From assembly GCA_038496445.1 (NCBI GenBank), contig JALMLS010000399.1, positions 1 through 43,775 of the forward strand: 43,775 nt of DNA, in the 5' to 3' direction. The translations under genes were made by a program, and so were the position numbers. Shown here piece after piece: positions 1 to 39,678 of the stretch. The notes under the pieces were generated by a model that saw only the letters and a program-made list of their open reading frames with translations, searched no databases and was not told the DNA's origin. This DNA comes from Trichosphaerium sp. ATCC 40318 (taxonomy: Eukaryota > Protista > Tubulinea). The first letter of the stretch is position 1, and every line of letters begins with the position of its first letter.

Positions 1-206
1 GTTATTCTTTTTACAATGCCACGTATTTGAGAACTATAAATGGTACAAATCGTTTCTTTACACGTGATAAAGTATGGTGAGAGCATTTTTGGCGGTTAGA
101 AAAAATGCCTTAAATCTTACACTTCCTTTGACTATTTGTCCATTTATTCAACAGCATCAAAACGTTAATATGTATATTGTTTACATGGCGTTTAATGTAC
201 AAAGAA

Positions 207-4491: not shown

Positions 4492-4729
4492 TTTTAGGGT
4501 AACAAGTGAGATTCTGTCCTATTATTCTTCAAAAACGTACGTAGCAAGATCTGCAGAAGTACGAAGCATGTTCACTACGGGTTGAGTTCGTATTTTTTGT
4601 CAATTAAAAAGTAGACTTATTCCCAAAAAATTATCACGTGGCTACCTCTGATTGCGCTAAGCCAGTAAACAAAACTATGAACTCAATTTCCACGTGACTA
4701 ACGATTGCGTCAAACTACTGTTGGTTGTT

Positions 4730-5475: not shown

Positions 5476-6588
5476 GCGATCAACTCCGAAAATAAAACGT
5501 TTACGCTCACCAAAAATACATTTGCATAATCACTATCCTTGTTGGCGATAACATTCAGGATACAACAATCTACAGCAAGCAGGTATTTTTGCAAAACGTG
5601 ATAATAAAACTGCTTTATTGAGAATGAACTACAATAGGCCCCAGATAAGTTCCAATTGACCACTTGTGCTTTATGTCTTTTTTGCAATATCTTCTGTATA
5701 ATAAAGTGATATAATGCAATTAATACGTTGAGCCATGATTTTAGCTTTGGGTCTAATAACCTTGAAAGTACTAGTTATCTTCTCTCTTGTTTCCTCCACG
5801 ACCCATTCCTATACCTCGCAGAATGACTTTGTATGTGTTACTCCCGACCATACTCATTAATACATTTTTCTATAACTTCTCCCAATAACTCTCTCTACGT
5901 ATGTGTTTAACCATTCCTCATCTTTCATTAGCGAATCTATATTTCACCTGCTTGGAGTTTACAGTACATGGCTTGTGTGCCGAAAAGCGTTCTAAAAATA
6001 AACAAAGTAATTATTTTTAAACGTTTTTTCTGAAATCAGATTAATGGGTAAAAATTAATCTTACGCATTTCCCTTCATCTGGGTACCTACAAACTTATGC
6101 AAAACTGTGTGTACTTAACATCTATGACTAAGTTGACCTATAATTAGCACTAATAAAACACAAATCCAGCACCATTACAAGGTACACATAATATGAAGTT
6201 TGTTTAATCCTTACCGTGTGTTTAGATATTCTAGCACTGTCAAATGAGTTCAAAACCCATTACCGGCTCCCTCAAAAGCAATAAAGAGAGCACCAATGAG
6301 TACGTTAACCTTGTTAGTGTGATCTAAACGTTAAATACGCTGAGATTACCACATTTACATTAATTGCATTACAAAATGAGTGAATAAAGTTTATTTCGGT
6401 TTTTGAGCACGTGTAAAACCGCAAACACGTTTTTTTTCGAAAAATTACGGAGTTGACCAGTAGAGTGATAAAAAATGTCACACTACAATCGCAGTGTTGC
6501 ACTGTGAGCATGTAGCTCCTTTTAATAAGTAAAATATGGATTCAAATTCTCACCACTTTATTTAAGTCGTTCAGAGACAGAAAAAGTC

Positions 6589-7500
6589 ATGCCTTCTGGT
6601 TCAAACCAAGAGAGTTGCGATGAGCAAACTAGCATACCAACAGAGAGCAGTCCTGATAAAAATCAAGTGTCCAAAACCTGCAACGTTCCCAGCAGAATCA
6701 CAATTTTATCGAGTGAAGATTGTGTGAATTATTCAGGAAGTCCTCTTCTTCGCCAGTCAGAAATATCATTGGAGGAATTTCCAGATGCAACAGATGAAGA
6801 TCTCGCTCTTCTCTCGGGTGTTAAACACTTGACACTGTGCAAAAATAACAAAATAACAAGCACAGGACTCAGCTCAGTGTGTGGAGTAGAAATTCTTAAT
6901 TTGTGGTATTGTCCGGAAGTTACTGATTCAGGCATATTCGCAATAGTAAAGCACCTCAAATTAATTAGCATGGTGGGTACAAGCGTTACAGACAAGGGCG
7001 TGAAAGCGTTTAAGGGAATAGCAACAGTTGGTCTACCACACTCCAAGTTAAGCGGAGATACTTTCTCAGCCTTGTCTGGTGTTTCTTATCTTGATCTATA
7101 TTCTGCTCACCTCAATAACAATGGCGGAATCTCAGCACTGACTGGAATACATACCGTTGATTTAACCAGAGCAACATTTACAGATGAATGTGTCGCAGCG
7201 CTAGCTGGAGTACATACCATTAACTTACAAGATACGATGGTTACAGACAAAGGTGTAGCGGCTTTAAAGGGCGTACACACTATCAGTCTCAAATTTTGTA
7301 AACGTATCAATGGATCTTGTATGAAAAGTCTTGCGAATGCTCACACTATTAACATTTCACGAACAAATGCAAGAGATGATTGGATCCTTCCACTTACCGG
7401 TGTACACTTGTTAATAATGAACTATTGTCTAGACGTGTCTTTTGAAGCTATGCAAACAGTTAGAAACTATGGAGGAGAAATAGAATGTTGCTATGGATAG
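6589..7500 (+). CDS. LRR protein of the same family, without a clear F-box
   Basis: 303 aa ORF with GVHTINLQDTMVTDKGVAALKGVHTISL repeats; retains the SPLLR linker seen after the F-box in paralogues. Confidence 0.82.
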   Translation: MPSGSNQESCDEQTSIPTESSPDKNQVSKTCNVPSRITILSSEDCVNYSGSPLLRQSEISLEEFPDATDEDLALLSGVKHLTLCKNNKITSTGLSSVCGVEILNLWYCPEVTDSGIFAIVKHLKLISMVGTSVTDKGVKAFKGIATVGLPHSKLSGDTFSALSGVSYLDLYSAHLNNNGGISALTGIHTVDLTRATFTDECVAALAGVHTINLQDTMVTDKGVAALKGVHTISLKFCKRINGSCMKSLANAHTINISRTNARDDWILPLTGVHLLIMNYCLDVSFEAMQTVRNYGGEIECCYG

Positions 7501-7650
7501 GCTGAGTTGTAACATCTCCACTTTTAGAAAAAAATTTGCAGAAAGTAATTACAGTCCAAGTCTAACCTACCAACTATTTCGACAAGAAACTAATAAACAA
7601 TCACTTTCAAATAGTAACCTTTAGTAAACGAAAGGACTCTTTTTTTTTTG

Positions 7651-8025
7651 TTAAAGGTGTATTGTACAAGTGAATACATACCCATTTATTTCATGTGGGC
7701 GAGATAAACAAGTGAACACGTGTTTGGCCTTAATCGGTACAAACCAAAGAAACCAATCCAGACGTGCTAACCCCCTTTGTAAGAAAGATGATGGGTAATA
7801 GGTTGTCATCCCATCCTTGCTTTTTAGGCCTAGCTTGCTGCAATAGCTTTGTTGAGCCTTTACTCCACTTTTTTTGTGAATTTTAGTGCAAATCCAATGT
7901 TTTTGTTTATTGTCTAGACTTACGTTAGTTGCTGCACGTGTTGAAGTTGCGTTCTTCCGCTTTCGCAATTTTTCTTTTGTTTTTGCCAAGATGCTCTCGT
8001 AGGAGGCCTCTAATGTGAGATTCAT
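7651..8025 (-). CDS. Hypothetical basic protein, 124 aa
   Basis: ATG-initiated ORF divergent from the F-box gene at 8104; no recognised domain. Confidence 0.3.
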   Translation of the reverse strand: MNLTLEASYESILAKTKEKLRKRKNATSTRAATNVSLDNKQKHWICTKIHKKSGVKAQQSYCSKLGLKSKDGMTTYYPSSFLQRGLARLDWFLWFVPIKAKHVFTCLSRPHEINGYVFTCTIHL

Positions 8026-8103
8026 TTCCGATAGTTTTTGAGTCGTTTTGATGAAGTTTTACTAGCCTAAACGAACTTAAATAAGTAAGCCCAACAAAGC
8101 AAA

Positions 8104-8986
8104 ATGTCAGTCAAACGTCCAACCTCAGGCGTAGCTATTTCATCACAATCCTTGTTGTCAATACCTGTTGAGATTCTTTTGATTATTATCGTGAGAAATG
8201 GCATTTCATGGCAAGATTTGGCTTCGTTACAACAATCAAACCATTTTCTGGACGATATGATACGAAACAACTCAGATTATATTTATCGAGGCTTGTACCA
8301 TCGGAAATGGGGTAAGGGCGCTGAAGAAATAGAGTCTGCTATCCACGTGATTATTCAGAAAAATTTAATGAAGTATAAACCCATAGCACCACCTACTGCA
8401 TACAAATTAGAACCAATCACGTGGAAAGAAAAGTACAAAAACAAACTTGTTCCAAACATCATTGCTGAGTTGACTTGTGATAAAACACGTGTACATAACG
8501 GTGATACTATATTATTCACACTCAAACTAGAAAATGTTGGTAACAAATCAGAGACCATACAATCCAGAGGTATTGAAGGAGGTCATGGTTTATATGTATG
8601 GAATTTCTAGAGTATCAGTTTCTTCTTCATATTTAGGTAATTATAGAACCATTAACTTTAGTGTTCCAAGCCTACATTACTTAGATATTATACTCAATCC
8701 AGGAGATGTACAAACATACACAGAACCTTTTCGTTTTGGTATATCACATCCATGCACAAACATTTTCTTCTCTAAGTCACAAGATGATAAACCTTCGGAA
8801 ATGTTATCTCTTCATAGTAAAAGCTTAGAAGTACGTGTTGCTGATTCTTCAACACCACATGTATTTCAGCTTCAAGCGTTTTTTAAACTTAACATTGTAA
8901 AGAAAAAACGTGAGGAGATGTCAGGCCATTGTTCTTATCTTAGTAGTAGTATTGTAAATCTTACCATGTACAAGCAAAAACAATAA
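8104..8986 (+). CDS. F-box protein with a beta-rich C-terminal region; frameshift near 8605
   Basis: LLSIPVEILLIII...WQDLASLQQSNHFLDDMI is F-box-like. ORFs 8104-8610 and 8534-8986 overlap and look like one gene. Confidence 0.6.
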
Positions 8987-9345
8987 ACTAGATGCCCAAC
9001 CAACTTGAAAATGTTTTTTGATGACTGATTTATTTGTTTAACTTGTCATAGCTATAATAGCAACGTTTTTCATACTTTCCATTCTCTTGCCACTCTTTGT
9101 ACTCACCATGCAAAGCACCTTCAATATAAAAACAATGTATCTTAACTTGGCCATGCCAATACCATTTCTTATACTCCTTATTCAGCTTACCATTGACATA
9201 AAAACAACGTAGACGTAATCTACCTGTTTTTTTCCATTCTTTGTACTTTCCATTTAAGCGACCATTTGCATAAGAGCACTGTACTAGTAAGACACCGTTG
9301 TCATACCACTCTTTGTATTTTCCATTCAACTCACCTTGACAGAAC

Positions 9346-10482
9346 CAGTAGTAAATTAAAAACGGGATTTTCCTCTGGAATCCTGTTAAATTCCGTGTTT
9401 TTTAAGGATTTTAACGGAATTGTGGAAAAAATCCCTAAGCAATCTGAATTTTCAATAGGATTTTTGATGGGATTTCTGCTATATTCCATTAAAATAAGGA
9501 ATTTCTTGGGATTTGTAAAAAAATCCCAAACAACAATATTGGCAAATGTTGGCAGCATATCAACGGGAATACTTGAAGGGATTTTTAACAGAATTCCGTA
9601 TGGATTTTGTAGGGAATTCCCTTGGGATTTTTAATGGAATTCCATAGGGATTTTTAACGAAATTCCGTATGGATTTTGTGAGAATTCCTTTGAAAAATAT
9701 TTTTGGTGAAAATTCAAAATTATTCATTATTTCGACAACTATCAAAGCCTTGCCTAACCAAGTTTTTTTTTAGTAAACCACATCGTCACTCTTTTATTGG
9801 TGTAAAAAACCAATGGATACAACGAAAAGACGTTAAATCAAAAAGTAAGCGAGATAAGTATTTTGGTGATTTTCGTTAGCAGCAACATTTCTATATCGCT
9901 TACTAATCCATTTTGAGGCTTGTAAAGCATTTCAAAGGCCTTTACACACCACTAGAACACGCATTTAGGGCATTAATCTCAAGTACGTTGTTTTTAAAGG
10001 TTATTTCCATTTAATTTATCAAAAAACTACTCTTTTCTTATTTTAGCTTCTACGAATGCGTTATTAGCAGTTTATGATCACGATACCAGGTGCGATAAAT
10101 TCTTGGCCAAAGATTGAAAAGATTTGATGAGTTTGGCTTGTATGCGATAGCGTGTGGAACATTTGCGTTTCGTAACTAAATTATCATTGGTAAATAAAAC
10201 GAATTTTGTGCTACAAAACTTGATGTAAATATTGTAAAGTATTTTGAGGTAATTTGTTTGGAATTTCATAAGAAATCCATTGGGAATTCCGTTGTTAATC
10301 CTTAAGGAATTCCGTCCGGATTCTTTAAGGAATTCCATCCGGATTCCATAGGGAATTCCATTCGGATTCCATAGGGAATTCCGTCCGGATTCCATAGGAA
10401 TAAAGGAAGAGATTTTCCGCTTATAAATCCTTAGGATTTTAAGACGGAATCCCTTAAAAACCCCGATTTAAATTTACCACTG
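9346..10482. mobile_element. Non-autonomous TIR DNA transposon A (~1.14 kb), 2-bp TSD AC
   Basis: Imperfect TIRs CAGTAGTAAATTAAAAACGGGATTTT versus reverse complement CAGTGGTAAATTTAAATCGGGGTTTT. AC flanks both sides. Dense GGAATTCC/GGATTT subterminal repeats; interrupts the MORN ORF. Confidence 0.85.
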
Positions 10483-10958
10483 ACGGCATTGCTTGTATAG
10501 GCTATCACCATCTTCATAGAACTCCTTGTACTGTCCATCAAGTTTACTGCAATCATAAGAGCAATGTACCTTCAATTTATCAACCCAATGCCATTCTTTG
10601 TACTCTTTATCCAATAGGCCATCAGAATAAAACGCATGTTTGCGTATTTGCCCATCACATGCCCACTCCCTGTACCATCCGTCCAACACGCCAGTTTTAG
10701 AATAAAAGCAATGTTTGTGTAGTACGTTATTATAGTGCCACTCCCTGTACTCATCTCTCAAGAAACCTTTGTTGTAAAAGCAGTGAAGTACTAACTCACT
10801 GTCACGCCACTTTTTGTACTCTCCGTCTATTTCACCTTGCGAATAAAAGCAACGTTGGAGCAAGGTATCTGTACCGCCCATCCACTTCTTATACTCACCA
10901 TCTTTTTTGCCGTTTGAGTATATGCATTGTTCAAGTGGTAAACCAGATTCAAGCCATT

Positions 10959-11970
10959 CAGGGCTGAAACTCAGCTAGGCATTGCCTTAAAAAATGATGC
11001 ATATTCCTAACATTTGGCATTAGGTGGCAAAATCAAGGCATTTGCATTTGGCAATGCCCAATAAAATAAGGCATTTTTACAAAAAGGCAATGCCTTCATC
11101 AAAAAGGCATTAAAACCAGGCATTTTTGGGCATCTTTTGGCATTGCATAAAATCAGGTAATGCCTTGTATTGCATTTTTTGGCATTGCATAAAATCAAGT
11201 AATGCCCTATATTGCAAGTACTTTATGCCTTTATTATGCCTTATTTTTTAAGCATTATATGCCTTGTATTTTAATTCATATATAAGGCATTGCCTATACT
11301 ATATCATAGGACTGATCACATTAAGGAAGTGGTTTAAGGTAAGTAACAGTCAAACAACTTTTACACTTTTTTTTTCACATCACCTACTGACGTTTTATAT
11401 AGATAGGCACCTAGCGCTCTTAGTAATTCATGAAATTAGACGAAACCACCGCCAAACGAACCGCAGCACCCTATTTCACCTACAACAGCAGTAGGAGTGA
11501 ACTCCGCGATATTTCCAGGACCGCGGAATTCTAACACTACAAGGTAAGTTTTTTTTTTTTTTTTTCTACACCATCTCATATTTTCTTTAAGGTTTTTTCA
11601 AATGTGGACTTAGGAGTTTTGTGTATTGTATGTGTACTGTATTATAAAATAAATAGTTGTGTTATTACCTGAAAATGCCCTGGTTTATTAGGCACTGTAG
11701 ACTATGACAATGCTTTCTTTTTGCCTTCAAAATAAGGCATTGATGCATGAGTTATGCCCTAATTTGAAGGCATAATTCCTTAAAATATGCAAGCAAAACC
11801 ATTGCAATCTTGTGTACCAGATGCAAGCATTTTTCATCAAAAATAAGGCATTGCCCTGTATTTGCCTTTTTGAATGAGGCAAAAACTAGGCATTTTTGTA
11901 AAAAATAAGGCATTATTTGATGAAAATGCCTAGGCATTGTCCAAAAATGCCTTGTTGAGTTTCAGCCCTG
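10959..11970. mobile_element. Non-autonomous TIR DNA transposon B (1012 bp), 2-bp TSD TT
   Basis: Perfect 15-bp TIR CAGGGCTGAAACTCA...TGAGTTTCAGCCCTG, TT on both flanks, many AGGCATT/AATGCC subterminal repeats. Excision restores the MORN reading frame exactly. Confidence 0.9.
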
Positions 11971-12438
11971 TTTGTTGTACTCTCCAACCAATCGGCCTTT
12001 AACATAAAAACAACTCAAAAACAGTTTGCTGTTGTAGTGCCATTCTTTGTACTCTTTGCTTAACTTGTCTCTGACATACGAGCAATGTACTTTCAATTGT
12101 CCGTTGCTAAACCAGTGCTTGCTCTCGCCATGACGTTTGCCATGTTTCCAAGAACATCTACGGAGAAGCTTCCACGTGTTGTTTTGACAATGAAGTTGTT
12201 TCATCCACACACCATGCTTTCTGAGCTTAGAATCAAACCTTGTCGTCATCGCCATGTGTTTTGATAACAATGGCCATTTATAAAAATGTCAGCTGCTAAA
12301 TCAGTAATACAAAGGTGTAGCTCCACTGGGAGGTTGTGCAGGTGACTTTTTTTTTTCAAACAAGAGGCGAGCGCCGTAGCCCTCACTTTATTCATAATAA
12401 TAATTACAAGATAATTACATTGAAAAAAATCACCGTCC

Positions 12439-12858
12439 CAGCTTGCCCGATCAGGCTCCGAAATTTGTTCTCACAAATTTTGGAGGGCCACGTGCCAGCG
12501 TCGTACCATAATACAACCTAATTAAACCAATAAAAGTAAAAAGGTAAGAAAAGAAATGGAAAAAATAAAAATAAAAAGTGCCAACAAAAGTCAAATTAAA
12601 ATCAGCTTGCCCGATCAGGCTCCGAAATTTGTTCTCACAAATTTTGGAGGGCCACGTGCCAGCGTAGTACAATAAATGATTGAATAATAAGAAAATAAAA
12701 GGAATATAGTGCTATTAAAAGAACAAATAAATTTTTGTAAAATTAAAGCATAAAATAAAAAGAAAAGAGAAAAGAACCAATAACTAGACTCATCCCAGCT
12801 TGCCCATTCAGGCTCCGAAATTTGTTCTCACAAATTTTGGAGGGCCACATGCCAGCGT
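12439..12858 (-). repeat. Three copies of a 63-bp structured motif in the LINE 3' UTR
   Basis: CAGCTTGCCCGATCAGGCTCCGAAATTTGTTCTCACAAATTTTGGAGGGCCACGTGCCAGCGT at 12439-12501, 12603-12665 and 12796-12858 (third copy has 3 substitutions), separated by unrelated AT-rich spacers. Confidence 0.93.
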
Positions 12859-12870
12859 CATGTATATTAA

Positions 12871-15800
12871 TTAATTGTAATCGTCTTCCCATTCAATAAA
12901 TCCAATTCGTTTAACTTGTTTTGATTTACGCTTTTTGAGTGAAGGAGCCAAATGCTTGGATAGAATAACGGTACCATCTCTGTTAAAACCATCTATACCA
13001 TGACCAATAGCAAATGCAGGAGTATTGCGCTGTCTACGCTTAAAGAGCCACTCCTCTGAACCCACAGTACCATAATCCAAGGAAACTTGAGAACCATCCA
13101 ATCTTCTAACTATAGATACAGCAGTGACATTATCAAACCACGATGGTTTATCAAAAGATTCACGATCTATGGTCAAAGAAAGCCACTTGTAAAATCTAAG
13201 GCGTAACGTTTGAGCAGACATCCACTTGTACTTCGGGACATTATGTTTCACATCATTCCTTATAATCCACGTAAAAGCCATAATAGCACCTAAACAAAAC
13301 AAAGTAGCAGGTTTTTTACATTTGATTAAATTTTGCTCTGTCAAAGCAGGTACGTTAAATTCTTCTATGAGATCTGACAGTACATCTCTAATACTAGCAA
13401 CAACTTCCCAACTGTAGAATAGCTCCTCATGTTTTTCTGGAGGCATAGCATCTTTGACATGAGTCACAGGCATCACCCTCATTATCACTCTCCATATAAC
13501 ATCTCTGACATAATTCGCTGATTTAAGTTCTAACAATGCAGGCAAACAGGTACACTGATCTTTGATAGCAAACCACGAACGCTTCCAACGTGAAACTGAT
13601 TGAATGAGCTTGATTTTCATCACGTGTTTAAGCTTTCTAGGTTTAGCTTTGAGACTAACGTTTAAGGAACACCACACATCTCTGCACTTTTTACCTAAAT
13701 CTGTACCAACAAACCATACTTCCGAATAAAAAGTACCTTTGATCAAGTGCCTTTCCCACAATGTCGCTTTAAACCCAGTAGCTATCTGCGCTATAGAAAA
13801 AAGTTGTAAACCACCATTTTTGTAGCACTGATTCATGTGAGTCCAAGAGACACGTGATTTATGAATGCTGTGATTGTAAACGTATGAACTTTCCCAAAGA
13901 AACCAATTAATAATTGAATGATACCTAGGAACAAGGTGAACAGGAAAATCAAGTGCTCTAGCACAATCAGGTCTAAAATTCTCAAGCTGTTTTTATGGTA
14001 GATACCATGAATTTGTGGTATAATTATACCATTGATTACAATTTTATACCACAAATTCCAGTATAATATACCATAAATCAAAGGATTTATACCATAAAAC
14101 AGCCAAATTATACCATAAATATGCAGTAGAAAGTGCGAATTTATACCATATTTTTTCACCTGAAAAAATGCAATATATGGTATAATTCTACCATAAAACA
14201 TGGTATAAAACACAGTATAATACCACAAAGTCTGGTATATTATACCTTAAAACTTGGTAGATTATACCACAAAACCAAGTGTATTATACCGTGTAAAAAC
14301 TGTTCTAATAATAAAACCACATTTATTAATACATTTTTTTGTTTACATCCGTGACCTTTGGTTTTGTCCATATCCTCTTTTGTGGTAGTTGACACATCAA
14401 ATAACCTTCAAAAAAAATATTGTACTTGCTGTAAGTGCATCGAATGGACATAGCATGAAAACTAGAAGAAGAATTAGTGAAGGCTTGATGCACAAAATAA
14501 ATAGTCGTACAAAAATTGCTGTTTTGTTGTGGTGGCAGCACTGGAAGTAACAAATGACCTGTGTGGTGGAGCCAAACCAAGACTAAAACAAAGAAATGAA
14601 AATAACTGCCAACTTCATCGGAAACAAGTTCTAGCAGAATCGTACCTGTTAGTTAACACATCCTGGTTTTTTTTTTATCATCTATTTAGCTTGGTTAAAA
14701 CCTATGGCAAGCGGCTTCAAAACAACTACTTTTAGTGTACCTTGTGTTGTGTGGGCAATAAACTGGACAAGACTTAGTTTTGTGCTCTGACTTAGCCAAT
14801 TGGTTTACAATATCACTCGTAAGGTCAACACATGGGTGTGAAGCCTAAATGCTATCTGTTCTGGCAAATGCGGGCGTTTAGTAGGGAAAAATTCAAAAAA
14901 ATCCAAAAAAATCCAAAAAAAACCAAAAAACTCAAAAAATGGGTAGGCTCTGAAACAACTTGGCCTTATAGCACTATTCACGCGTTTTAACATGCATTGG
15001 AGCGTATATCAAAAATGTCAAAAAAAAATAAATAATTTTGCTCCTGATTTGGTAAATGAGGCTGTATGGCGTTGATTGAGTGTAAAAATGCCTATGGAGG
15101 GGAGAAAAAAATGAGAGCCGGGGAAAAAAACCTCCAATTGGAGGTTTTTTGCGAATGGGCATTTTTCAAGCGCTAAACGCGTTTTTGGTGTGTCTACCAC
15201 TGTAGCGTTCTAACATGGGGTACGTGGAGTGGTTTCTTCCTCAAATACTGTCAATCGGAGAAAATTGGCCAATTTATCCCTAAAACGCCCGCAATTGGGG
15301 CGCGTTACCAGATTTCTCTCTTAAAACTGTTTTTCACACATTTATATGCCAATTATGTTCAATAACGGCTACTGTCAAAGCATTGTGTGGTATGGCGTTT
15401 GCGTAGGGCCAAAGGCTATTAAATCAAGTATAGACCAAGTGAACTTTGACTAACTTATACTTATACGGTATAATACCACGGTATAATACCACATTTTATG
15501 GTATAATTATATGGTATAATGCACGGTATACAATACTGTAAAATACAGTATAATACCATGGTATAATACTGTGTTTTATGGTATAATTATATGGTATAAT
15601 GCATGGTATACTATACTTTAAAATGCAGTATAATACCATGGTATAATACTGTGTTTTATGGTATAATTATATGGTATAATTATGGATTATACTGAGCTTG
15701 TACCATAAAAGGTGATTATACCATAAAATACGGTATAATACCATGATAATTTTCAGACCTGTATTCGCTTGAAAACACTTTGAACTGTTAACAAAAAGAC

Positions 15801-17646
15801 CAGTAGCAAGCTTATATTTGTCTAAATACTTGTTAAGATAAACAATATCGTTTTTAGAGCTGGCATTCAGAATGAGATCGTCAGCAAAGAATAAATTCTT
15901 TACACAGACATTGCCAGGAAGTGTAACACCAGCAATTTTTGATACTTTGTTGATGAAAGAGTTGAGAGGTTCTACTATTAGAGCAAACAAATAAGGGCTG
16001 ATAGGATTGCCTTGACCTGTACCACGTTTTGTTGTAAAAGAGCCTTCACTGATGCTGTTGTTAATACGCACTTTAACATCAAGGCGCAGAGCATGTACAA
16101 TTGCCTCAGCAAACTCAGACTTGTACCCAATAAATTTTAATATATGGATCAATGCCAAATGACTACAAGAGTCAAAAGCCTTTCTGAAATCATACGCAAT
16201 AAGACTCAGCCACTTTAATTCTTTTTTACAAAAACTAATAACTTCTAGAGTTGTTATGAGATTGTCAACAATATCTCGCCCTGGTATGAATCCATTTTGT
16301 GATTCCAAAATGTATTTTTGCATGAATGGAGTCATACGGTTGTAAAATACTTTCATAAATATTTTATAGTCAACGTTTGCTAAAGTAATTGGACGGTAGT
16401 TACTCAAATCAGAAGCGTCTCCTTTTTTAAAGATAGGTACAATGATTCCCTTACACAGATGCTCATCAACCTCACCATTTTCAAGGAACAGATTGAATAG
16501 GTTAGCCAATATAGGAGCAAAAGTACCGCTCAATGATTTGTACAAGCACGCTGTTAAACCATCAGGCCCAAGAGCCTTGTTAATTGGGAGTTTTGCTATA
16601 ACCTTAGTAACTTCCTTGACAGTAATTTTTTTGTTAAGCTTATCCACAAACTTGTTATCACACGGAATGTCCCATTTGTTAATAAACGATTCAAGTACCT
16701 TTTCTTCAAAGCACTTGGAACTTCCTCAAACATAGCTTTTGTTGATGCCGCTAGATTATTAAGATGTTGGTTTTTTTCCTCACAAAGAAATTGATATGTT
16801 AAGAACTTCTTTTGTGTAATATCAGTACCATTTGCTAGTTGAGAAGCAATAAGTTCACAAGCTGTAATTTTGTTTTTTAATTCATCCTTTTGCGCTTCCT
16901 TTAAGATGTTGATCATCGCCTGTTTAGCAAAAAAGTAGTCGTCAACAGAGCGACCAAAATTCATCTCACAGATTATATTTTTGTTGTAAGAATTCCAGAA
17001 AACTTGATTTAGTTTAAAACTCTGCTCACTGCGTTTTGGAAAATTAAGTTCTAACAACATTAATTTATGATCTAAGTGAAAAAACCCAGTTGGAACAAGT
17101 TTAAAACTCTTCATGTGATTTTTAACATAGTCAGAAACAAAAATCATGTCTATTCTACCACCACGGTCATGGGTAGGATGAGACTTTTCAGTAAAAACAG
17201 CAACGTCAGAAAATCCTAATAAACAAATGTTTTCATAAATTTCTTTGTCCAAACTGTTTTTGTCAATACGTAAATTAACATCACCTGCTATTATGTCGCA
17301 TTGTGCCAAATCATCATAGACAGAATCCCAAAAAACACATTTGTTTTTGCAAGGTGCGTAAACAACACCTAAGAGAAACACCTGATGCTTGAACATCAAC
17401 AATTAATAAACGACCTTTTTGTTCATGCACAAGTTTCGATTGAGCTCCACGGAGTGTAGCAAGAGCGACCCCAGTACCTCTACCAGCATCTGTGTGTAAA
17501 ATACGTTTACTGTTAATATGAGAAGGGAATGAATTGGTTTCAGTAGCACAAAAGTAATTACACTTTAAATTAAATGAAAATTGTTTTAGGCGAAAGAAAT
17601 TTGAAAAACCTCTACTATTTACTACCGCTAGTTTGACTCTAGGCAT
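12871..17646 (-). pseudogene. LINE ORF2: AP-endonuclease, reverse transcriptase and C-terminal domain; frameshifted and interrupted
   Basis: MPRVKLAVVNSRGF...ATETN...YAP...IAGDVN...RIDMIFVS...DHK (APE); GPDGL, NYRPITL, QNGFIPGR, DFRKAFDS, GQGNPISPYLF, FADDL (RT); FLW...GGL...WIIRN in the C-terminal part. Frameshifts near 17390 and 16650-16710; insertion at 13968-15761. Confidence 0.93.
13968..15761. mobile_element. Non-autonomous TIR DNA transposon C nested in LINE ORF2
   Basis: Ends CAGGTCTAAAATTCTCA and reverse complement CAGGTCTGAAAATTATCA. TATACCA/TGGTATA subterminal arrays include three ~80-bp tandem units from 15466. No TSD is visible and the flanking ORF2 appears deleted. Confidence 0.8.
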
Positions 17647-18543
17647 TAGATGTTTTAGTCCTTGGATTATAAGAGTTACCTCTTTGTGTTGAGGTTTTTG
17701 CTTTCTTTCGTCTCGTATTATCATCTTTAGAAGTATCACGTGCTCTTTTGGCATTATCACGATATGAGGCAGCCTCCAAAGGAGAGAGCTTTGAAATATT
17801 TTGAGAATACCTTTGCACTTTTTCAAAATCACTTTCGGAGTTAAAAACCTTCATAACCAAAAATCCAGATCCACATTTGTATACCTGATATTGTTCCAAT
17901 CCAGTGAGTTTTTTTGAACATACGAAAACACACTGTTAGTGGGTAAATCACTAAATTTTGTATGCCATCTACGGAACATCAACATCCGTCCTCCAAATCC
18001 TAAACATATTCTATCACAAATAGTGCACATAGTCTCTTTGTCATCAAGAATGTCAAAACCTGATATAACAATCTTTATAGAGCCGTGAGCATAAATGTAA
18101 AATTTATATCTTTTGTCTCGAAAAATATCAATTTGTTTAGAAAATTGTGTATGTAAATTCTCCTTATTTTTTATGACCATGATAATTCTATTTGGATATT
18201 CTTTTGCAGTGATTATTTTAGAACTACCTTTGAAAGCATTAACTAGGTTCAAACGGTGGTCGTTGAATTCTTTTAGTTCGCCATTGGAAGAGTCTTCGTT
18301 GATTCCAAAATTTATAATCCAATAAAGCTCGTTGTTCATTTTATCAGCATTGTACCTCATAATCCGCTCTTCGGAGACTTTTTTGATACAATTCAAGATA
18401 ATGTTGTTGTCGATTTTTCGTTCTTCTACAGGAAACGTACTTGTAAGGTTTCGGACATCTTCAGCATCTTCCATATCAAAATCAGTAACACTTGAGTAAG
18501 AGGCTTCAGCCCCGCTGGTTATGGCAGTATCTTTCGGTTCCAT
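17639..18543 (-). CDS. LINE ORF1 (~300 aa; one apparent frameshift at the T-run near 17910)
   Basis: ORFs 17851-18543 and 17639-17899 join into one protein whose stop overlaps the ORF2 start region (ATG at 17646); position is typical of ORF1. Confidence 0.75.
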
Positions 18544-19072
18544 CCTATTAAACGTATTCTACAACAGAACGGAACAATTAAAGAAATATAGTAAGAGACG
18601 TTGTTAACCCCTGACCAATTAAGGCAGGCTCAGGTTGTGCAGGTGACTAAAATCAATGCTGTCCTTATGTGCCTACTATCACGTTATAAAAATAAAAGAT
18701 ACACGTGTACTACCTTTTCCATTGTTGCGAAAGTGGTATAGTTTAATGATTTTATTCGTTCTCGTTTCAATGATTTGTAACGCGCAATAAGCTTGGCTAA
18801 GTTTGTCGTCACTAACCAAAGGAGTATCTATTTACGATACTTTCCGTTAAAACATACGCCTAAAAGGTTGTTCACAAATATCGCTCTAAAACTCAGGCGC
18901 TTTTACAGTTCATTGAGACTAAATTTCGGAAAGCTTTTTTTTCCGTAACTTTATTCACTTATTCAATGCGTTAATTTTACATACTCTCAGCCGGCAAACT
19001 TTTATTGCGAAAAGGAACAAAAAATCGTTTTGCAGTTTTGAAGAGTATCACAAAAATAAGCAAAAGGATATT

Positions 19073-19144
19073 AGGCTCCACCCGGAGTCGAACCGGGGTC
19101 ACATGTACCAAAAACACGTATGATAACCGTTACACCATGGAGCC
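19073..19144 (-). tRNA. tRNA-Gln(UUG)
   Basis: GGCTCCATGGTGTAACGGTTATCATACGTGTTTTTGGTACATGTGACCCCGGTTCGACTCCGGGTGGAGCCT folds as a cloverleaf: acceptor GGCTCCA/TGGAGCC, anticodon loop TTTTGGT, T-loop TTCGACT, discriminator U. Confidence 0.92.
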
Positions 19145-19954
19145 ATTTGTTGATAACAAAGTGCAGAGACGCAATACCGATCGAAAAAATATGCCTAGCA
19201 GAACTACCCAAACCAACGAAATACTGTAGCCTTACATATTTTCGCAGTATAACTCCATACTAGTACGTACGAGGGAAAACCAATCACGAGAGTGCTGTAG
19301 TTGAACCAAAACAAATAAAGCGGTAATTTGTAATATTAGTAGCGGTAAGACCGTGATAAGCCATCTTGCAAGGAGAATAGGCAAATAACCATCAACATAA
19401 TACTAAAAACGCTTTGTCGCATTTAATTCATTCTGGGCTTACCAGCTGTAAACACGTTTTAGCTTCTTGCTGAGTTTAAGATGTTGGCGTGGTCTTTGGT
19501 TTTGTCAAACTACACCTGGTGGTGTCGATACGCTCAGAAGTGGTGTGCTGTATTCACTAATCACTCTAAACACACAATCTATATTGTACGAAACCGGTTT
19601 TGGTGCCAAAATCCTTGAAAACTGTACGACATGCATCAGCTGATAACTTGCGGTTAGTACTGGCGGTGTTGGTTTTCCACTGGTACTGCAAACGAACAAA
19701 AATCAAACAGTACACTGGTTTTGGCATCGAAAATCTGATTGAATTCAAGCAACTAAAGAAGAGTTAGCAATCTGCCAATACACGCAAGACGTTCTTTGTG
19801 ATCTCCTTTTATTATTCCTGATTGAAAGATATCAATCAGATGGCCTGGTATCGGACTTTGGTTGAAAAGCGAAAACGACGAAATTACAGTATTTATTTCA
19901 TTATTTACAAACACAACAAAGTGAACAACAACAGCGAAAACAACTTCTCTAACA

Positions 19955-20445
19955 ATGAATCAAGCACACCAACGTATCGATAATGCTATAGTAGACTTGT
20001 TCGAGAATTTCTCTTCCGAAGCCTATGATAGATTGGGCAACGAACTAGAAGCCGAATACGACGTCAATATACCTGCCACAGCTGGAAGGAGTCGCCCTGC
20101 TAATCATTCGGCTGAAGCAATACAAGTCATGGAAGAATATCCTTACAACTCTTTATTTGGAAAAATCAATCATTTGAAATTTTTTGTTTTTTCTTTCTTC
20201 TTGTTTTAATCTTCACACATCGTTCTCCTTAACTCTTACTCACTTGGTATACACCTAACATACCTGAGCCATACCCTAAGTATCATGAGAAGCTCGTACT
20301 CGCAAGAGACTCTGGTCTAACTGTAGCACAAGTTAGTACTTGGTTTGCTAACATGCGCGCACGCCGTGGACACACCAGAACCAAAAAATGCACCGAGGAT
20401 TCAATAGCAGCCACTCAAACCGAAAGATTAGTCGATACTGAATAA
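19955..20445 (+). CDS. TALE homeodomain protein, short class (S1); exons 19955-20136 and 20244-20445
   Basis: Splicing the AT-AC intron gives ...[48 protein letters not shown] (PYP loop, WFxN). Confidence 0.88.
20137..20243 (+). other. U12-type (minor spliceosome) AT-AC intron
   Basis: 5' ATATCCTT, branch TCCTTAAC at 20226-20233, 3' AC 10 nt later; removal restores the homeodomain. Confidence 0.92.
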
Positions 20446-20917
20446 AAACAGTAGCATTGACGTAATTCAATAGTGAGATAGTATTATGTAATGCAAATAA
20501 ACTGACAGCTTGATATTCGCAACTCGTAGTAATTTTATTCTTTTTTTGGACTTTTTTTGTACCACTTTTTAAACTATCGCGTTCGGGTTTTAAACAACAG
20601 TTTGCCTTAGAATATTATCTAAAGCGTACCTTCGTAACCACTAGAAAGCGTAATCTGCTACGTTGATAGAATTCTAATTGATTAGTTCGAAATCAATCTA
20701 TTGCTCTCAACGGCTCTTATATTCGCCGCTATCAATCACCTCACGCTGTACCAACACTCTCAAACTACCACCAGATGATTGCTAAACACGGGCAAAAGCA
20801 ACTGTAGCTTTGAGAAAATACAACGCCGATAATCTTTCAGATTCTAATTTTATTCTTGACATACTATAATACATTTTCCAACATTACCAAAAATGGAACG
20901 CAGGAAGAAGTCTTAAA

Positions 20918-22583
20918 CTACAACAATGCTAAATGAAGCTGTAGGGATACTTCTTTGTTCTTTAACGATGTAGCTTTACCCAAAGCATCTCGTCCAACAG
21001 TTAAAATTTGTTCCCAATCATTAACAACAGCAGAAGCATGCGTTAAAGTATCGCCTAAAGCTTTAGAAGCGGTTATAAGCTTCTGTTGATCATCTATTAT
21101 CCTTGTAGACTTTTGAAGTAGAACACTCGCTTCTTCTAGCTTTGTTCTAACTTGTGGTTGATCTAGCTTAACATTATCACGAACTCTCATCATTTGAGCG
21201 ACTTGGTTCACTTTCACGCTCATTTTTTTGTATTTTTCGAGACAAGCCGTTAATTCCTTTTCAAATGAAAACAAGTTTGTGGCTTGCACAGAAACAATAG
21301 AGTCACCGAAAGCCTAAACGGAAACTCAGAGCGAACAAAAAAAAGACAAAGAGGATAAAAAAGAAGTGATTGATTTTACAGATCTGTAAATTCCTGCGGT
21401 TGTTGGTACTGAAAACTCACCTTTTGTTTGCTGTTTTCCAGTTCAGTAGATTGTTTTTTGAGCTGTGTACGAAGTTGTGAAACATTCTTTGATACAGCGT
21501 AAATTTCACCCTAGGGAATCGTGTCAGCGTGCACAATTAGTTCGTAAGAGTCGTACGAGCGTATTTGCTGTATTCGCTTTTTTGGCGATTGCTGCATTTT
21601 TGTTCATGAGTTGCCATTGAAGGAGTTGGGTTTGTAGAAGCTCTATACGCTTCATTTTGGTGTCCTTAGACTTTTCCATTCCCATTCGGACTCGCTACAA
21701 AAAAAATAAATAAACATTCTAAAAACAAGTTGTTCCGGGCTTCTACACGAACAGAAAAAATAGAAAAAAATGCCACGCTATGCACATCATATTAATGTAC
21801 TCATAGAAAACTTTTGAGCTTCAAACGATTTGATACAAACGCGCGAAAAATCGGTAAATAAAAATAGCATTTTAAATCCGAACGTACTGTCGTTAACTTT
21901 GAACGTTGCGGTTTGTTTTGTGCTGGTTTGGTAGTAGTATTGACTCTACGCTTTCTTACAACAGGAGTTTTTGTAAGAAAAGCTCTGGCCTGATTTCTCG
22001 CATTTTCACTTGCAAACGCGCTATTTCGTACTGGTTTGCGCTTCTTCATCGAAGAACGAAGCGTACCAGCTACTACCGGCTTTGGCTTTCGTTTGTGGGC
22101 CCAGTCACCTGTATGGTGGCCGTGAGTCGTCATTTCAAAGCTTTGATTTTAACGTACGTGTTATCATCGTTGCGCGTCTTCCATTTGGCGCTGGTTGGCG
22201 TTTTTGAAGAGCAGCAGGAAGCATTGTAGCTCTTCGTGTTTGTAGTGGCGGAAGTTGAGTAAGTGGCTTCCTGGTTTTCTTTGTGGTTGATGATGGCTGC
22301 ATATAACGCGAAGCAACATGTTTAACTACAATTCAGCGTGAGCAATTTTACCGTTATTCTTTCTTTACCTCTTCTACGTTTCGCTGTAGACGGTGCTGCA
22401 GTGCGTTTTGGTACAGTTTTTCGGTTATACGGCGTCTCAAGCAGAATATCATCAGTAGGTAGCCGTCGTTGCTTTTTTGCTAATAAATATAAGGTTTGAA
22501 GGTGGTTTTATTAGCGTTTTACTTGTTGAGCTAAATAATCGCTTTTGAACTGATCCAAATGGCGTTTGCGAAGACAGAGACAT
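20918..22583 (-). CDS. Multi-exon gene of unknown function: basic low-complexity N-terminal part and coiled-coil C-terminal part
   Basis: ATG 22583, several GT-AG introns (e.g. 22480-22522), exon ORFs 21801-22133 and 20918-21289 (heptad-like). Exon structure is not fully resolved. Confidence 0.5.
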
Positions 22584-22748
22584 GATACAATCAACGCGGG
22601 AAACAAATCAAGTGGTGTTTTCAAACGAAGTCATTTTTTTTTTTGTACATTGGTTTATTGACGCATAGGCAGCCCATTTACATTTTTATGAGTATCATAG
22701 TACTCGTACAAGTAAGTGATGAGCTAGTGTCGTCGCACGTGAAGAATT

Positions 22749-23288
22749 TTACTCTTCTTCAGTCTTTTTAGCGCGTTTAGCGGTCTGTTGCCTTTCCAGT
22801 TCTTCCTGGGCCTTGCGTATCTTGTAGGCCTTCTTGGTATCGCCACGGCGACGGCGGGTGTTGGTGAACCATACGCTCACTTGAGAGACTGATAGTCCTG
22901 TAGTTGTAGCAAGTTCTTCTTTGACGTCAGTTTCTGGGTATGGCAGAGGTAGATGAGCTTGGTACCATGTACGTTAGAGTTAAGGAGGAGAAGATTGAAA
23001 AAGCAGAAAAATGATTGATTAAAAAGGATATAAGTCCATGGTAGCAATAGCATCAGCGTTGTGGTTTGCGGGGCGGTTATTACCAGTTATTGGAGGAATT
23101 CTAACGTCGTAGTTGTTTTCGTGGTCCTGTCTAATGGTTGGGGAGTAATCGTTTAGGTCTTGACCGTCAAGTAGCCCAGTCACTAAATGATCAACATCAG
23201 ACTCTATCATCGCTAATTTTTGCAATCCTTTGCGAACTGCTTCGTTTTCGAGAGTGTTTTGCGGTTGTTGTTGTTGAGATGCTGCCAT
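22749..23288 (-). CDS. TALE homeodomain protein, short class (S2); exons 23288-23032 and 22968-22749
   Basis: Spliced product ...AIATMDLWYQAHLPLPYPETDVKEELATTTGLSVSQVSVWFTNTRRRRGDT. Confidence 0.9.
22969..23031 (-). other. U12-type AT-AC intron (63 nt)
   Basis: 5' ATATCCTTT, branch TCCTTAAC (22986-22979), 3' AC 10 nt later; same codon position and phase 2 as the S1 intron. Confidence 0.92.
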
Positions 23289-23751: not shown

Positions 23752-25144
23752 ATGGCTGAACGCACCGAAGATACCGCTCGTATTAATGAAGAAGTACTCA
23801 ATCTGGCAAAAGCCTTCCAAAAATCTGTAATAATCACTCCAAAACAACCAATTCCCGAAGTTGTACCCCAGATAACAAAAGATGAAGTATTTGCAATGTT
23901 TGCCGAGCATATAACCAGCGAACTCATGGTTCAAAAAGTTACTTGGTTATTCTCGCAATACGTTAACGCTCTTACGCAACTTGAAGCCATCGTAAATACC
24001 AAGGTTGAAAACCTATCACGTGAGCTATCCAGCCCAGCTATGGTTGCGTTGATTCCAAGCGAATTGAAGAAATTGAAATTGCACATCGTTTCAATCGAAT
24101 ACAACTCAGTACGCCTTAAATACCAGGAGAGACTTGCCAGAGCTATTACTCAAGCAATTGAATATCAACGCACTCTTCCTGAGCAAACTAGACGAATTCC
24201 TCCTCGCGCGCACAGAATTCTTACCAATTGGCTCTTTGTACACGCTGCAGTACGTATATTTGTTTCTTTCGTTCAACCTTTGTTATGATTGATACTAATT
24301 ATTGTCATAGAATCCTTATCCAACCGAGGCCGAGAGACAGAAGCTTGGCTATGTTTGCAACTTGAAATGGGCTCGAGTCAAGACATGGTTCAACAACAAC
24401 AGGAATCGTCGCCGTGAAGATTTGGCTGCATGGCTTGTTGCACGTGGTGTTGTACCAGTTCCAAACGCTCAAGGTCGTCGCAAAAGAAATCGTGCTGCTG
24501 CACCTGGGCGTACACCTGTAGCCATGCCTGCTCGTGCGCCTGTAGCCACTCCTGCGCGTGCACCTGTAGCTGTACCTGGGGGCGCACCTGTAGCCAGACC
24601 TGCTCGTAAACCTGTAGCATCTCCTTCACATAGCGCCACTCCAGCTACCCCTCAGCGTAGACCTAATCTGAAGAAGATTAAGAAAGAGAAGAATTACACC
24701 GAGAAAACACCAACCACAACTCCAGCTAATCAATCAAATGTACACTCAATGCCACCTTCGCCAGCTGTCAACAACGCTGTCAATACAGTCTTTCCAATGA
24801 CAAGTACGCTTGTTTTTACTACTCTCTAAGCCTTTCTTACTTGCTTAGCTACGTTTCCACCCGCCATTCTCACTGCTCCAGTCCTAGATGATGCGTTCAT
24901 CAAAACTGAAACCAATTTTCTAAACCATGGAATGATAACTGATGGAGAGGAACCAATGGAACTTGAGCTACCTATATTTCAAGACCCTCCCGAAATGCTA
25001 TTTAGCCCGATGGGAGAACTCGTAGTATCTGACGAGATGCTCCTTGACACTGATGATATCATCGACCACAGTTTTGGTGAACTTGTAACTGGTTTCTTAA
25101 ACGAGATGGCAGACCAATTTGTCTTTCGTGATCCTAAACCATAA
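23752..25144 (+). CDS. TALE homeodomain protein, long PBC-like class (L1); introns 24250-24310 and 24804-24848
   Basis: Spliced ILTNWLFVHAA-NPYPTEAERQKLGYVCNLKWARVKTWFNNNRNRRR; helical N-domain, Pro-rich linker, acidic C-terminus. Confidence 0.9.
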
Positions 25145-33453: not shown

Positions 33454-34737
33454 ATGACAGAAACCACCTCTATGAATAACAAAGCATTCAATCAACAACT
33501 AGAAAACGTAGCTGCAAAGACTAAAAGCCTTACTCTAAGTCAGCTAAACAACAACTCCATCACTCCTCCGATCTCTAGACCAGCTTTCTTCCAAAAGTTC
33601 AACCAAGCAGTAAACGGAAACCTTTCTCTCGAGAAGCTATCATTCCTTTACGATAGATACGTCTTAGCGCTAGAAGACCTCGAAAGTCAAGTAACTAAAC
33701 AAGTTGCAAAACTTGAGCGCGTTCTTACAACTCCACCAGCATCGAACTTTATCAACGAAGCAACACGTGTTCAAAAGCTCAATTCTCTCTCTGCTAAATT
33801 CAATACTGTTCGTGTTGCTCAACAAACAAAGTTGTTTCAACTTGCTGCTAAGGCAATCGAACGTTGTGCTCTTATCCCAACATCAAGAAACCTCTCACCA
33901 CGTGCAAAGAGAATTCTAACCCACTGGCTCTTCCAAAATGTTAACGTACGTCCTTTTCTCTATCTCGCTTTGTCTATTTTAGTATCGCCTATCAATCACT
34001 CACTTTACGTTTAGAATCCTTGTCCAACTGACGCTCAAGTGCAAACTCTTGCTTACGTATGTGACATCGAACAAGTGAAAGTAAAAAACTGGTTCAACAA
34101 CAACAGACATCGACGCTCAGAGGACCTTAGAACCTTCCGTGTAAACAACGGTATCGCTCCTAATGCTCCCACACGCGTAGTACAACCATGTGATAACGAG
34201 AAATCGACCGCTCCTCCTAACCGCAAAATTCTTCGTGCCAATCGTGTCAAACCTGCTACCAACAAAGCAGCAACACCAACGCCAGTACCAATGCAAGTGC
34301 CTATCGTGATTAAAGATGAACCAAAAGAAACAGCGCCTAAATCTCCTCCTGCCACCCTCCCTCTCATTCTGCCTTCTCCAGTGATCAGCGGCCCAGCTGA
34401 AGTGCAACCTGTCGAAAGTACGTCTTTTATAAACAAACAGTTTCTGTTGTTTGACATAATTCTTACTTTGTTTTTTGCTATAGTTACTGTTCTCGAAGAA
34501 GGCTTTTCGGCTCCAGTTATTGACTTGGATGGTTCCGCTTACTTTCCAGAAGGCGAGGATTTTCTCACAACTGGTATGATCGAAGAATATCAGCCATTTG
34601 GCAGCTTTGGTTTTCTGAATGCAGGAAATAACATGGATGCTGCGGGCACAGAAGTTGCCCCTGTCTCTGATACGATGTTTATGAACGGAATGGTGGATGA
34701 ATACGTTTTCAATGAAGACTCTCCTCAAGATCTCTAA
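33454..34737 (+). CDS. TALE homeodomain protein, long class (L6); introns 33946-34014 and 34418-34483
   Basis: KLSFLYDRYV N-domain; ILTHWLFQNVN-NPCPTDAQVQTLAYVCDIEQVKVKNWFNNNRHRR. Confidence 0.88.
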
Positions 34738-37203: not shown

Positions 37204-39678
37204 TCAACGTTTTCGACCTCTACCTTTACGTTTTGGTCTTTTCTTTGGTGATGAAGTTGAATTACCAACGTTAGGGTTCGAAAGAGATACGACTTGGCCT
37301 TCTTTTATTTCTTTTTGATCCATCGCTTCTATTTTATCCTTTGCCTCAATATACAGCATTAAATCACGCACTTGTTCCTAATAAAATACTTAGTTTTAAA
37401 TATCCATCAACAGAAAGAATGATTGACAAGTTCGAAAAAAAAAAAAAAAAAATTGCCCAAATTAGGAATGTACCTGCAACTCTTTAATTTTCTTATCTTT
37501 ATCCATATCTGTATCAGCTTCACGGGATTTCAAGTATTCTATCTTCTTACGATACTCATCTTGATTTTCTTGCATTGCCTTATTGACATTTCGTAAAAAC
37601 TCAGATTCTTGCATTAAATCATTCATCTTCTTCTCCAAGTCCTTTGTACGGCATTTTAAACGTTGTTTTTCGCTTTCAACAGTTTGTAGACGCTTTGCGC
37701 AATCTATTTTCTGACCAAGCAGTTGAGCATACTGATCCTCCATAAACGCTAGTTTACCGGTTTTCTGGTGATGCACCATTGCTAGCTGCTTTTCGAAGTA
37801 GTCTCGCTGTGTTTCGAGCTGCGCTGTAAGAAGATAGGAGTACTCCAAGGATAAAGCATCTAGCTTACCCTACAAATGATTTAGACAGAGTTTGGAAAAT
37901 GTATCGGGCGAAGAAAAGTCTGGAAAATCTCTAGAATTCTTGATTTTCCACTACGCGTACCATATACTCCTTTCCTTTAGCCTTAGAGTACTTTGGATCT
38001 TCTTCACCGCTCATTCCAGGGTCTGGTAATGCGATTAATTTACCGTCAGCTTCATTTCTGACAAGTCTACAAAAAAATCAGAAAAACTGCTATAAAACTG
38101 AATAAAAGTAGCGCAAACACTACAAAGCATTGAGTGCTCCACAAACGTGCACAAGAGTTCAAAAAAATTCTACAAAAAGCCATCTACGCGTACCTATGCA
38201 CGTAGCCATCACTAGTATAATCCCAGACACGTTGCGTTTCCAACTCGAGTGCATAAGTATGTCTGCTTTGCTCGAAATGTTGAAAAGCGTGGGAGTTAAC
38301 ATAGCGTCCACAACCCACGTGACCACATACTAAGCATATCCAAAGAGCCTTTGACGAACCACAACCATGGCATTGAGTCTTTGAACCATTTGGTTGTTGA
38401 ACATGACGACAAACTGGACAAGAATTATCTTCTCGCCACTTCCTTAGGCAGTGGCAATGAAAGTAGTGGTTGCATAGTATAGTAACAATACCAGTTGCTG
38501 AACCATCCAATCGCTCTAGAATACACGTTGGTAAGCATTAATCGCCAAAAAAATAACAAATGTTTTTTGCTTTTTTTATGGATTAAACTGAATGTCTCCG
38601 GACGATTGTCGCATACTTGCCCTTAATTGACAAGCACACTGAAAGATACGCTTTAGGAATTTTTTATTGCTCCTTGGAGGCTGTGACACCGATTGAATTG
38701 CGGCGCACACGGTTTAAGAGCTTAAAATAAAAAAACAGAAAAAAAATTGTACCTAAGCACACCGGACACGTTGGTAGCTCCTTTTCCATCTGATGTGGGA
38801 ATATAGATGACTTTGAGTCAACAAAGTCAACTCCTTTGGCGAATACTGGATAAGCTACTTCATCACCCTGTAAACAATAAGTCAGAATACCCTCAGAGGT
38901 GTCAAAATGTGTCAAATGACATTTTCGGATAAAAAACCCAGAAAGGCTTAATTATTTAGATTTTGGGCATATTAACGCCCCTCATGACTCAAAATACTGT
39001 CAAGTAGGGGAGCTGGATATCCCGTATTACGTTTTTTTCGCATTTATGAAAAAAAAAAACTGATCACATGTTCATCACGTGAGAAGTAACTTACCAATGA
39101 AGAGAATTCTTTTCCATAATAATGGAGATAGAATTCATCAGCATGCTTCTGCTCTCTAAAATTAGCCAACACCATGTAACGTTGACTTGATGCATCACTA
39201 GTGAGGTAAAAAAGTCAGACAAAATGAATTTCAGGTGACGTCATAATAACTGGGCGAATTGACGTGAATCAAAGCTATTTTCATACCTTAATACGCGCAT
39301 GCCATCCATGTCTGCTATAAATGCTCCACACCAAGTAATAAAATCAGCAACCAAAATATAACTCGGTACTGCGAGTATTAGGATCAATCGTGAAGTTAGC
39401 TTCTAATTTGCGGTGGTTAGCGTGGATTTGACAAGAAATAACGGTAAATGCCGTTTTTAACGTACAGGAAGTTTACCGCGCTCATGTACGATACCATGCG
39501 CTTCTGCATCTCGCAATAAATGAATCACACCCTTAGTAATATGCACCGAAGGGTTTCCTGCAAAAAAATGGACAGTGCTACCACACACACCATTAGAACT
39601 CGTTTGATCTTTTTTAGGTGATTGGAGCGCCATTGCTTCTGTTTTAGGGTCTTCACACTGTACTACCACTGAGAACAT
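37204..39678 (-). CDS. BRAP: BRCA1-associated protein BRAP2/IMP-like E3 ubiquitin ligase (multi-exon)
   Basis: BRAP2 domain (ILAVPSY...DFITWCG, RYMVL), RING-H2 ELPTCPVCLERLD...LCNHYFHCHCL...CPVCR, ZnF-UBP LWICLVCGHVGCGRY...HA..HF...HTYALELETQRVWDY, coiled coil EYSYLLTAQLETQRDYFE...QVRDLM. Confidence 0.93.

Follow-up and report, generated by a model that had tools for sequence, protein, structure and literature searches.

U12-type AT-AC introns at the same homeodomain position in two paralogous TALE-class homeobox genes of Trichosphaerium sp. ATCC 40318

The stretch of DNA analyzed here (the window) spans positions 1 to 43,775 of contig JALMLS010000399.1, read on the forward strand, in the genome assembly of the amoebozoan Trichosphaerium sp. 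ATCC 40318 (GenBank assembly: GCA_038496445.1); it is 43,775 nt long and has a GC content of about 37%. The window contains a cluster of homeobox genes belonging to two classes, referred to here as S class and L class. Two of the S-class genes, S1 and S2, encode small TALE-class homeodomain proteins and are paralogs of each other, and the homeobox of each is interrupted by a predicted intron that begins with AT, ends with AC, and carries the consensus signals of introns removed by the minor (U12-dependent) spliceosome. Sequence comparisons with paralogs and with other haplotypes of the locus confirm the presence of these U12-type AT-AC introns in both genes.

S1 is encoded on the forward strand. 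Exon 1 (19955..20136, +) starts from the ATG at 19955 and is 182 nt long (60 x 3 + 2), which places the intron that follows in phase 2. In translation, this exon encodes the N-terminal region, the N-terminal arm of the homeodomain, and most of helix 1, and its product ends with ..RPANHSAEAIQVME, corresponding to the arm and helix 1. The U12-type AT-AC intron (20137..20243, +; 107 nt, phase 2) opens with the 5' splice site ATATCCTT at 20137-20144 (+), or ATATCCTTA at 20137-20145 in its extended form, and closes with the terminal AC at 20242-20243; the branch site TCCTTAAC occupies 20226-20233 (+), and its branch A is 11 nt away from the last intron base. Exon 2 (20244..20445, +, including the stop codon) contributes the last base of homeodomain codon 18 (GA/T, Asp), Trp19, the TALE loop (PYP), and helices 2 and 3 (WFANMR), and its product reads WYTPNIPEPYP...WFANMRARR.

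S2 has the same organization on the reverse strand. Exon 1 (23032..23288, -) starts from the ATG at 23288, is 257 nt long (85 x 3 + 2, again giving phase 2), and encodes a product that ends with ..RPANHNADAIATMD (N-terminal arm and helix 1). The U12-type AT-AC intron (22969..23031, -; 63 nt, phase 2) has the 5' splice site ATATCCTT at 23031-23024 (-), extended to ATATCCTTT at 23031-23023, the branch site TCCTTAAC at 22986-22979 (-), and the terminal AC at 22970-22969; as in S1, the branch A lies 11 nt before the last intron base. Exon 2 (22749..22968, -, including the stop codon) supplies the last base of codon 18 (TT/A, Leu), Trp19, the PYP loop, helices 2 and 3 (WFTNTR), and a basic tail, and its product reads WYQAHLPLPYP...WFTNTRRRR.

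In both genes, the intron splits homeodomain codon 18 after its second base, inside helix 1 and directly ahead of Trp19, a position written as 18(2/3) in the notation of PMC6219170; W48 of helix 3 served as the reference from which Trp19 was numbered. The first base of exon 2 accordingly lies 1 nt ahead of the Trp codon in S1 and S2 alike. Both proteins show hallmarks of TALE homeodomains, namely the three-residue PYP loop extension and a helix 3 of the form WFxNxR, and exon 2 of each matches the Pfam Homeobox_KN model over its full length (positions 1-40 of 40; 45.9 bits for S1 and 56.2 bits for S2, against a cut-off of 24). To recognize U12 AT-AC introns, we used the motif RTATCCTT starting at the first intron base and the motif TCCTTRAY with its branch A ~10-15 nt from the 3' splice site; both introns show this 5' splice site, this branch site, and the AT-AC termini, and their removal restores both reading frame and homology. 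If the intron is retained, an in-frame stop codon follows after 24 intron codons in S1 and after 4 in S2, and the list of open reading frames (ORFs) cuts the two genes short within the intron, at 84 amino acids (aa) in S1 and 89 aa in S2. The preliminary description of this DNA had proposed canonical U12 signals in both introns, at an identical phase-2 position just before the helix-1 Trp, and had blamed the introns for the absence of both homeodomains from the ORF track. On these points it was accurate throughout: all of its coordinates, including the junctions 20136/20244 and 23032/22968, are correct, both introns are at 18(2/3), and both ORFs end inside the introns.

Support for the two junctions comes from intronless paralogs, from an intronless allele of S2, and from the differences between alleles of S1, all compared exon by exon. 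Within the window, the S-class paralog S3 (36767-36264, -; 168 aa) has no intron and reads through the intron site, as does its Pfam Homeodomain match at residues 78-130, which makes S3 an internal control for the junction. S4, also in the window, likewise lacks an intron at 18(2/3), as do at least three S genes on other haplotypes. The assembly carries two further copies of the locus besides the window, on contigs C301 and C205. Contig C301 has S1 with the same intron and, in addition, three S genes without an intron, whose products contain ..AIQVMEDWYTP.. or ..IQVMESWYT..; the split S1 codon GA/T yields Asp, the residue found at that place in the C301 paralogs that read AIQVMEDWYTP. In an exon-wise alignment with five intronless relatives, exon 1 ends at column 121 and exon 2 begins at column 123, leaving exactly one column for the split codon. 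Contig C205 carries an S2 allele that lacks the intron altogether: at the predicted intron, the nucleotide alignment of the window and C205 alleles opens one gap, exactly 63 nt long, the reading frame is kept, and exon 2 is about 90% identical at the nucleotide level. The match that blastn finds for these two haplotypes breaks off at window position 22967, which is the first full codon of S2 exon 2.

The substitutions that separate alleles indicate that coding constraint acts on exon 2 of both S1 and S2 in the frame predicted for each. Between the window and C301 alleles of S1, 0 of 182 nt differ in exon 1, 4 of 107 nt differ in the intron (all in its interior, with the splice signals unchanged), and 3 of 202 nt differ in exon 2, all of them synonymous changes at third codon positions. 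Between the window and C205 alleles of S2, changes in exon 2 fall most often at third positions (24), followed by first (14) and second (9) positions. These patterns bear on the possibility that the introns are not functional, either because S1 and S2 are truncated or in decay, or because the major spliceosome removes the gaps at other sites. Word-index protein searches, with the intronless S3 and a C301 S gene as queries (the latter contains junction-spanning words identical to spliced S1), found no S-class protein in a collection of 5.8 billion proteins and no homolog outside the present genome, a result that counts against a functional interpretation of the introns and is compatible with decaying genes. 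Several observations point the other way: exon 2 is constrained in the predicted frame; the splice signals are perfect U12 consensus sequences; neither intron contains any AG dinucleotide; neither gene has an in-frame GT-AG alternative, the nearest GT..AG in S1 being out of frame; and the gap in the intronless allele has exactly the predicted length. We therefore regard non-functional introns as a very improbable explanation.

Components of the minor spliceosome are encoded in the same genome. A U11 small nuclear RNA (snRNA) gene scores 66.4 bits, above the Rfam cut-off, and its 5' end UAAAAGGG can be read directly as pairing with CCUUU of the 5' splice site. A U6atac candidate (C20:307774-307894) also scores above the Rfam cut-off, at 51.9 bits, and it retains the AGAGA and GGUUAGCA boxes. 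The U12 gene is present over its full length, and its branch-site box, GAGUAAGGAAAAU, is intact; read directly against UCCUUAACUC of both introns, this box forms 9 base pairs around a bulged A. At the protein level, the genome encodes PDCD7, the U11/U12 59K protein (42.5 bits, cut-off 27); the zf-U11-48K Pfam family gave no match, and since its model has just 25 positions this result is uninformative.

Three results from this search count against our interpretation of the two introns. First, the U12 gene, although full length, scores only 39.2 bits, below its Rfam gathering cut-off of 53. Second, the sole U6atac candidate has GAGCC where human U6atac carries AAGGA, its pairing partner for the 5' splice site, while the introns keep a perfect ATATCCTT; a genome search for a further U6atac, of canonical form and carrying the AAGGAGAGA box, returned nothing above the control. 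Third, a search with the Rfam family found no U4atac, although with 50 of 2688 candidates scored this is no evidence of absence. A U4atac pattern built as the complement of the genome's own U6atac stems gave counts equal to the control, and its two best matches are not U4atac according to cmscan. The preliminary description had taken the introns as a sign that the host retains the minor spliceosome, and it had proposed a genome search for the minor snRNAs. That view holds for U11 and U6atac, both above cut-off, and for PDCD7/59K; it holds with less force for U12, which is full length and sub-threshold, and it does not extend to U4atac, which was not found. Taken as a set of sequence matches, the parts that are present support retention and suggest that the host has not lost minor splicing, unlike Dictyostelium discoideum.

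Pattern counts across the assembly (70.28 Mb in 642 contigs, with the reversed pattern as control) place the two introns in a genomic context. The strict AT-AC pattern, ATATCCTT..TCCTTAAC..AC, matches 17 times (control: 4), and three of the 17 matches are at the present homeobox locus. The GT-AG version of the U12 pattern matches 11 times (control: 3), and a looser U12 pattern matches 225 times, some of these nested (control: 39). By these counts, consensus U12 introns are real but rare in this genome, on the order of 100. For comparison, the published annotation of Trichosphaerium sp. lists 27,369 transcripts with 8.7 introns each, or ~2x10^5 introns; that assembly comprises 70.87 Mb, its GC content is 37.69%, and its introns average 75 nt (PMC10521059). 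Introns at the present locus, and U12-pattern sites in other parts of the genome, are likewise short, mostly below about 200 nt. With 17 strict matches per 70 Mb, the occurrence of two in a 44-kb window at the same homeodomain codon is far beyond chance; because S1 and S2 are paralogous, however, the two introns count as one evolutionary event.

The individual motifs are not enriched in the window by themselves: RTATCCTT has five matches against 2.75 expected, and TCCTTAAC has three against 1.42 expected. The other three RTATCCTT matches (404, 5366, and 19071, all on the - strand) were ruled out as introns because none has a downstream branch site. One of them, the ATATCCTT at 19064-19071, directly adjoins the 3' end of a tRNA-Gln (TTG) gene (19073-19144, -) and does not represent an intron signal.

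From the evidence above, we consider it very probable that S1 and S2 are each interrupted at 18(2/3) by a U12-type AT-AC intron that needs to be removed, likely an old intron shared by the two genes and kept as a tolerated relic. Transcripts of S1 and S2 would have to lose the intron in order to encode a DNA-binding protein; with the intron retained, translation would end within it and give an N-terminal fragment without a homeodomain. By the established mechanism of minor splicing, the AAAGGG box of U11 would pair with the 5' splice site, and the GAGUAAGGA box of U12 would pair with the branch site UCCUUAACUC through 9 base pairs around the bulged A; both boxes are found in the genome's own snRNA genes. 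The intronless C205 allele of S2 and the many intronless paralogs show that the S gene family can do without the intron, and we infer that the intron most likely persists because it is tolerated, as a relic, and does not act as a gate that regulation requires.

A gating role was nevertheless part of the preliminary description, and a sequence motif in the introns bears on it. The motif TGATTGAT matches 16 times in the window against 2.9 expected; matches lie within the S1 intron (20165-20172, read on -), within the S2 intron (23012-23019), and within the GT-AG homeodomain introns of two L-class genes (24286-24293 and 33991-33998). Introns of the cluster may thus carry putative binding sites. 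As a gate, slow or stage-dependent minor splicing would limit the output of S1 and S2, and retention would yield either no protein or a decoy partner that lacks the homeodomain. For animals, rate-limiting splicing of U12 introns is an established concept. The 84-aa and 89-aa fragments expected from retention, the enriched TGATTGAT site in both introns, and the perfect preservation of splice signals between S1 alleles whose intron interiors vary are all compatible with such a role; however, conserved splice signals are expected of any intron that requires removal, and the absence of the intron from the C205 S2 allele and from most S-class paralogs means that any gate would be optional. On balance, a regulatory gate seems improbable.

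For the history of the tolerated intron, we lean toward the view that the two introns are homologous, predate the split between S1 and S2, and afterwards underwent precise deletion from other S-class copies, S2 on C205 among them. They share position and phase, and their last 21 nt are nearly identical; beyond the splice signals they also have an interior 12-mer in common, AATCAATCATTT, a similarity that 56 of 20000 shuffles match. Gain of minor introns is considered rare, with precise deletion as their usual fate (PMC10639083). The alternative is a recent gain or transfer, in which the intronless S class is ancestral and the intron arose once, for example in S1, and was copied into the window allele of S2 by gene conversion. 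That just a minority of the genes bear the intron (S1 and one S2 allele), that S1 and S2 lie 2.3 kb apart, and that the introns resemble each other closely both in the last 21 nt and in the interior 12-mer would fit such an event; the different intron lengths (107 vs 63 nt) and mostly different interiors would not, and the flanking exons of S1 and S2, only about 50% identical in protein, show no recent conversion tract. In view of these differences and of the rarity of U12 intron gain, we judge a recent gain unlikely.

Two considerations reduce confidence in the ancient origin of a shared intron. In a tree of S-class homeodomains (58 columns), the window and C205 alleles of S2 are sisters with support of 97/97, and nothing else is supported; since the tree resolves only this pair and not the order of events, the choice between loss and gain rests on parsimony and on intron similarity. 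In addition, the 12-mer AATCAATCATTT is the complement of TGATTGAT, which is enriched across the cluster, and it could therefore reflect a shared putative binding site rather than common descent.

The copies of the locus on the three contigs differ sharply between their conserved and variable portions. C301 is 95-97% identical to the window over window positions 127-22632, and the flanks of C205 (copy at C205:51820-85002) are 95-97.5% identical to window positions 127-19192 and 37470-43598. Between these flanks, the homeobox cluster is only about 70% identical, is rearranged, or has no match, and gene number, order, and sequence all differ. Based on these comparisons, the window, C301, and C205 are three haplotypes of one hypervariable locus. 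In the published assembly of Trichosphaerium sp., heterozygous regions were reduced with Redundans (PMC10521059), which fits the survival of only very diverged haplotigs such as these three.

C301 resembles the window on its left side and C205 on its right side. C205 has no S1; an L-class gene (near C205:63293, -) stands in its place. The switch from conserved to hypervariable sequence lies within S2 (window 22632-23288): the homeodomain and tail of S2 in the window share about 90% identity with those on C205, and exon 1, which encodes the N-terminal domain, is barely alignable and highly diverged between haplotypes. Homeodomain mating-type alleles of basidiomycetes combine a variable N-terminus with a conserved homeodomain, a pattern like that of S2. 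A fragment of an S-class gene on C301 (C301:35442-35681, -) encodes only the first 80 residues, contains an in-frame TAA, and is probably a pseudogene remnant. Between S1 and S2, a multi-exon gene (window 20918-22500, -) with no Pfam match is about 90-95% conserved across all three haplotypes, unlike its homeobox neighbors. Farther to the left, window positions 12348-18631 (~6.3 kb) contain ORFs similar to those of long interspersed nuclear elements, including endonuclease-like ORFs at 16596-18543; this segment is missing from both other haplotypes, indicating an insertion polymorphism.

The setting of the S2 intron allows a more far-reaching proposal, which we regard as speculative and quite improbable: that the U12 intron segregates as a presence/absence polymorphism among old, diverged alleles of a two-class TALE locus (a candidate mating-type or self-recognition locus), houses a putative TALE-type TGATTGAT site, and thereby ties allele-specific expression or autoregulation to minor splicing. 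If this were true, the minor spliceosome would be needed for some alleles and not for others.

Compared with the U12 AT-AC introns known from animals, plants, Acanthamoeba, and Physarum, the S1 and S2 introns share the ATATCCTT 5' splice site, the TCCTTAAC branch site located 10-15 nt from the 3' end, the AT-AC termini with no polypyrimidine or AG requirement, a phase other than 0, and a host genome with U11 and U6atac genes and a full-length, sub-threshold U12. They differ in being carried by small, lineage-specific TALE homeobox genes for which public protein sets yielded no relatives, in that they are very short (63 and 107 nt), like other introns at the locus, and in that one of them is present or absent between haplotypes of a single assembly. 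Intron positions shared among TALE homeodomains include 44/45, 48(2/3), and the 24(2/3) of BELL/GLX (Joo et al. 2018, PMC6219170). As in those genes, a homeodomain intron is common to the paralogs of one class and differs between partner classes; however, neither the S-class position 18(2/3) nor the L-class position in the loop is among those named in PMC6219170. Introns of the L-class genes in the cluster are of the ordinary GTACGT...YAG kind and about 60 nt long, and they separate loop residues b and c in phase 0, whereas the S-class intron is of the U12 type. The S2 allele that lacks the intron to the base, with its frame kept, resembles known cases of intron presence/absence polymorphism and precise intron loss; it differs from them in that the lost intron is of the U12 type and sits at the margin of a homeobox cluster that is hypervariable and multi-allelic.

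With these results, correct models are available for two homeobox genes that would be truncated by ordinary GT-AG gene finders as well as by ORF lists, and such models matter for reading a candidate life-cycle or mating-type cluster. They also add one more amoebozoan host, outside Physarum and Acanthamoeba, with clear consensus U12 introns. In other respects the introns are a fairly ordinary feature and reveal no new mechanism; the most interesting aspect is intron presence or absence at the level of alleles. A U12 intron that is found in one allele and is precisely missing from another would offer a natural experiment on the cost or regulation of minor introns.

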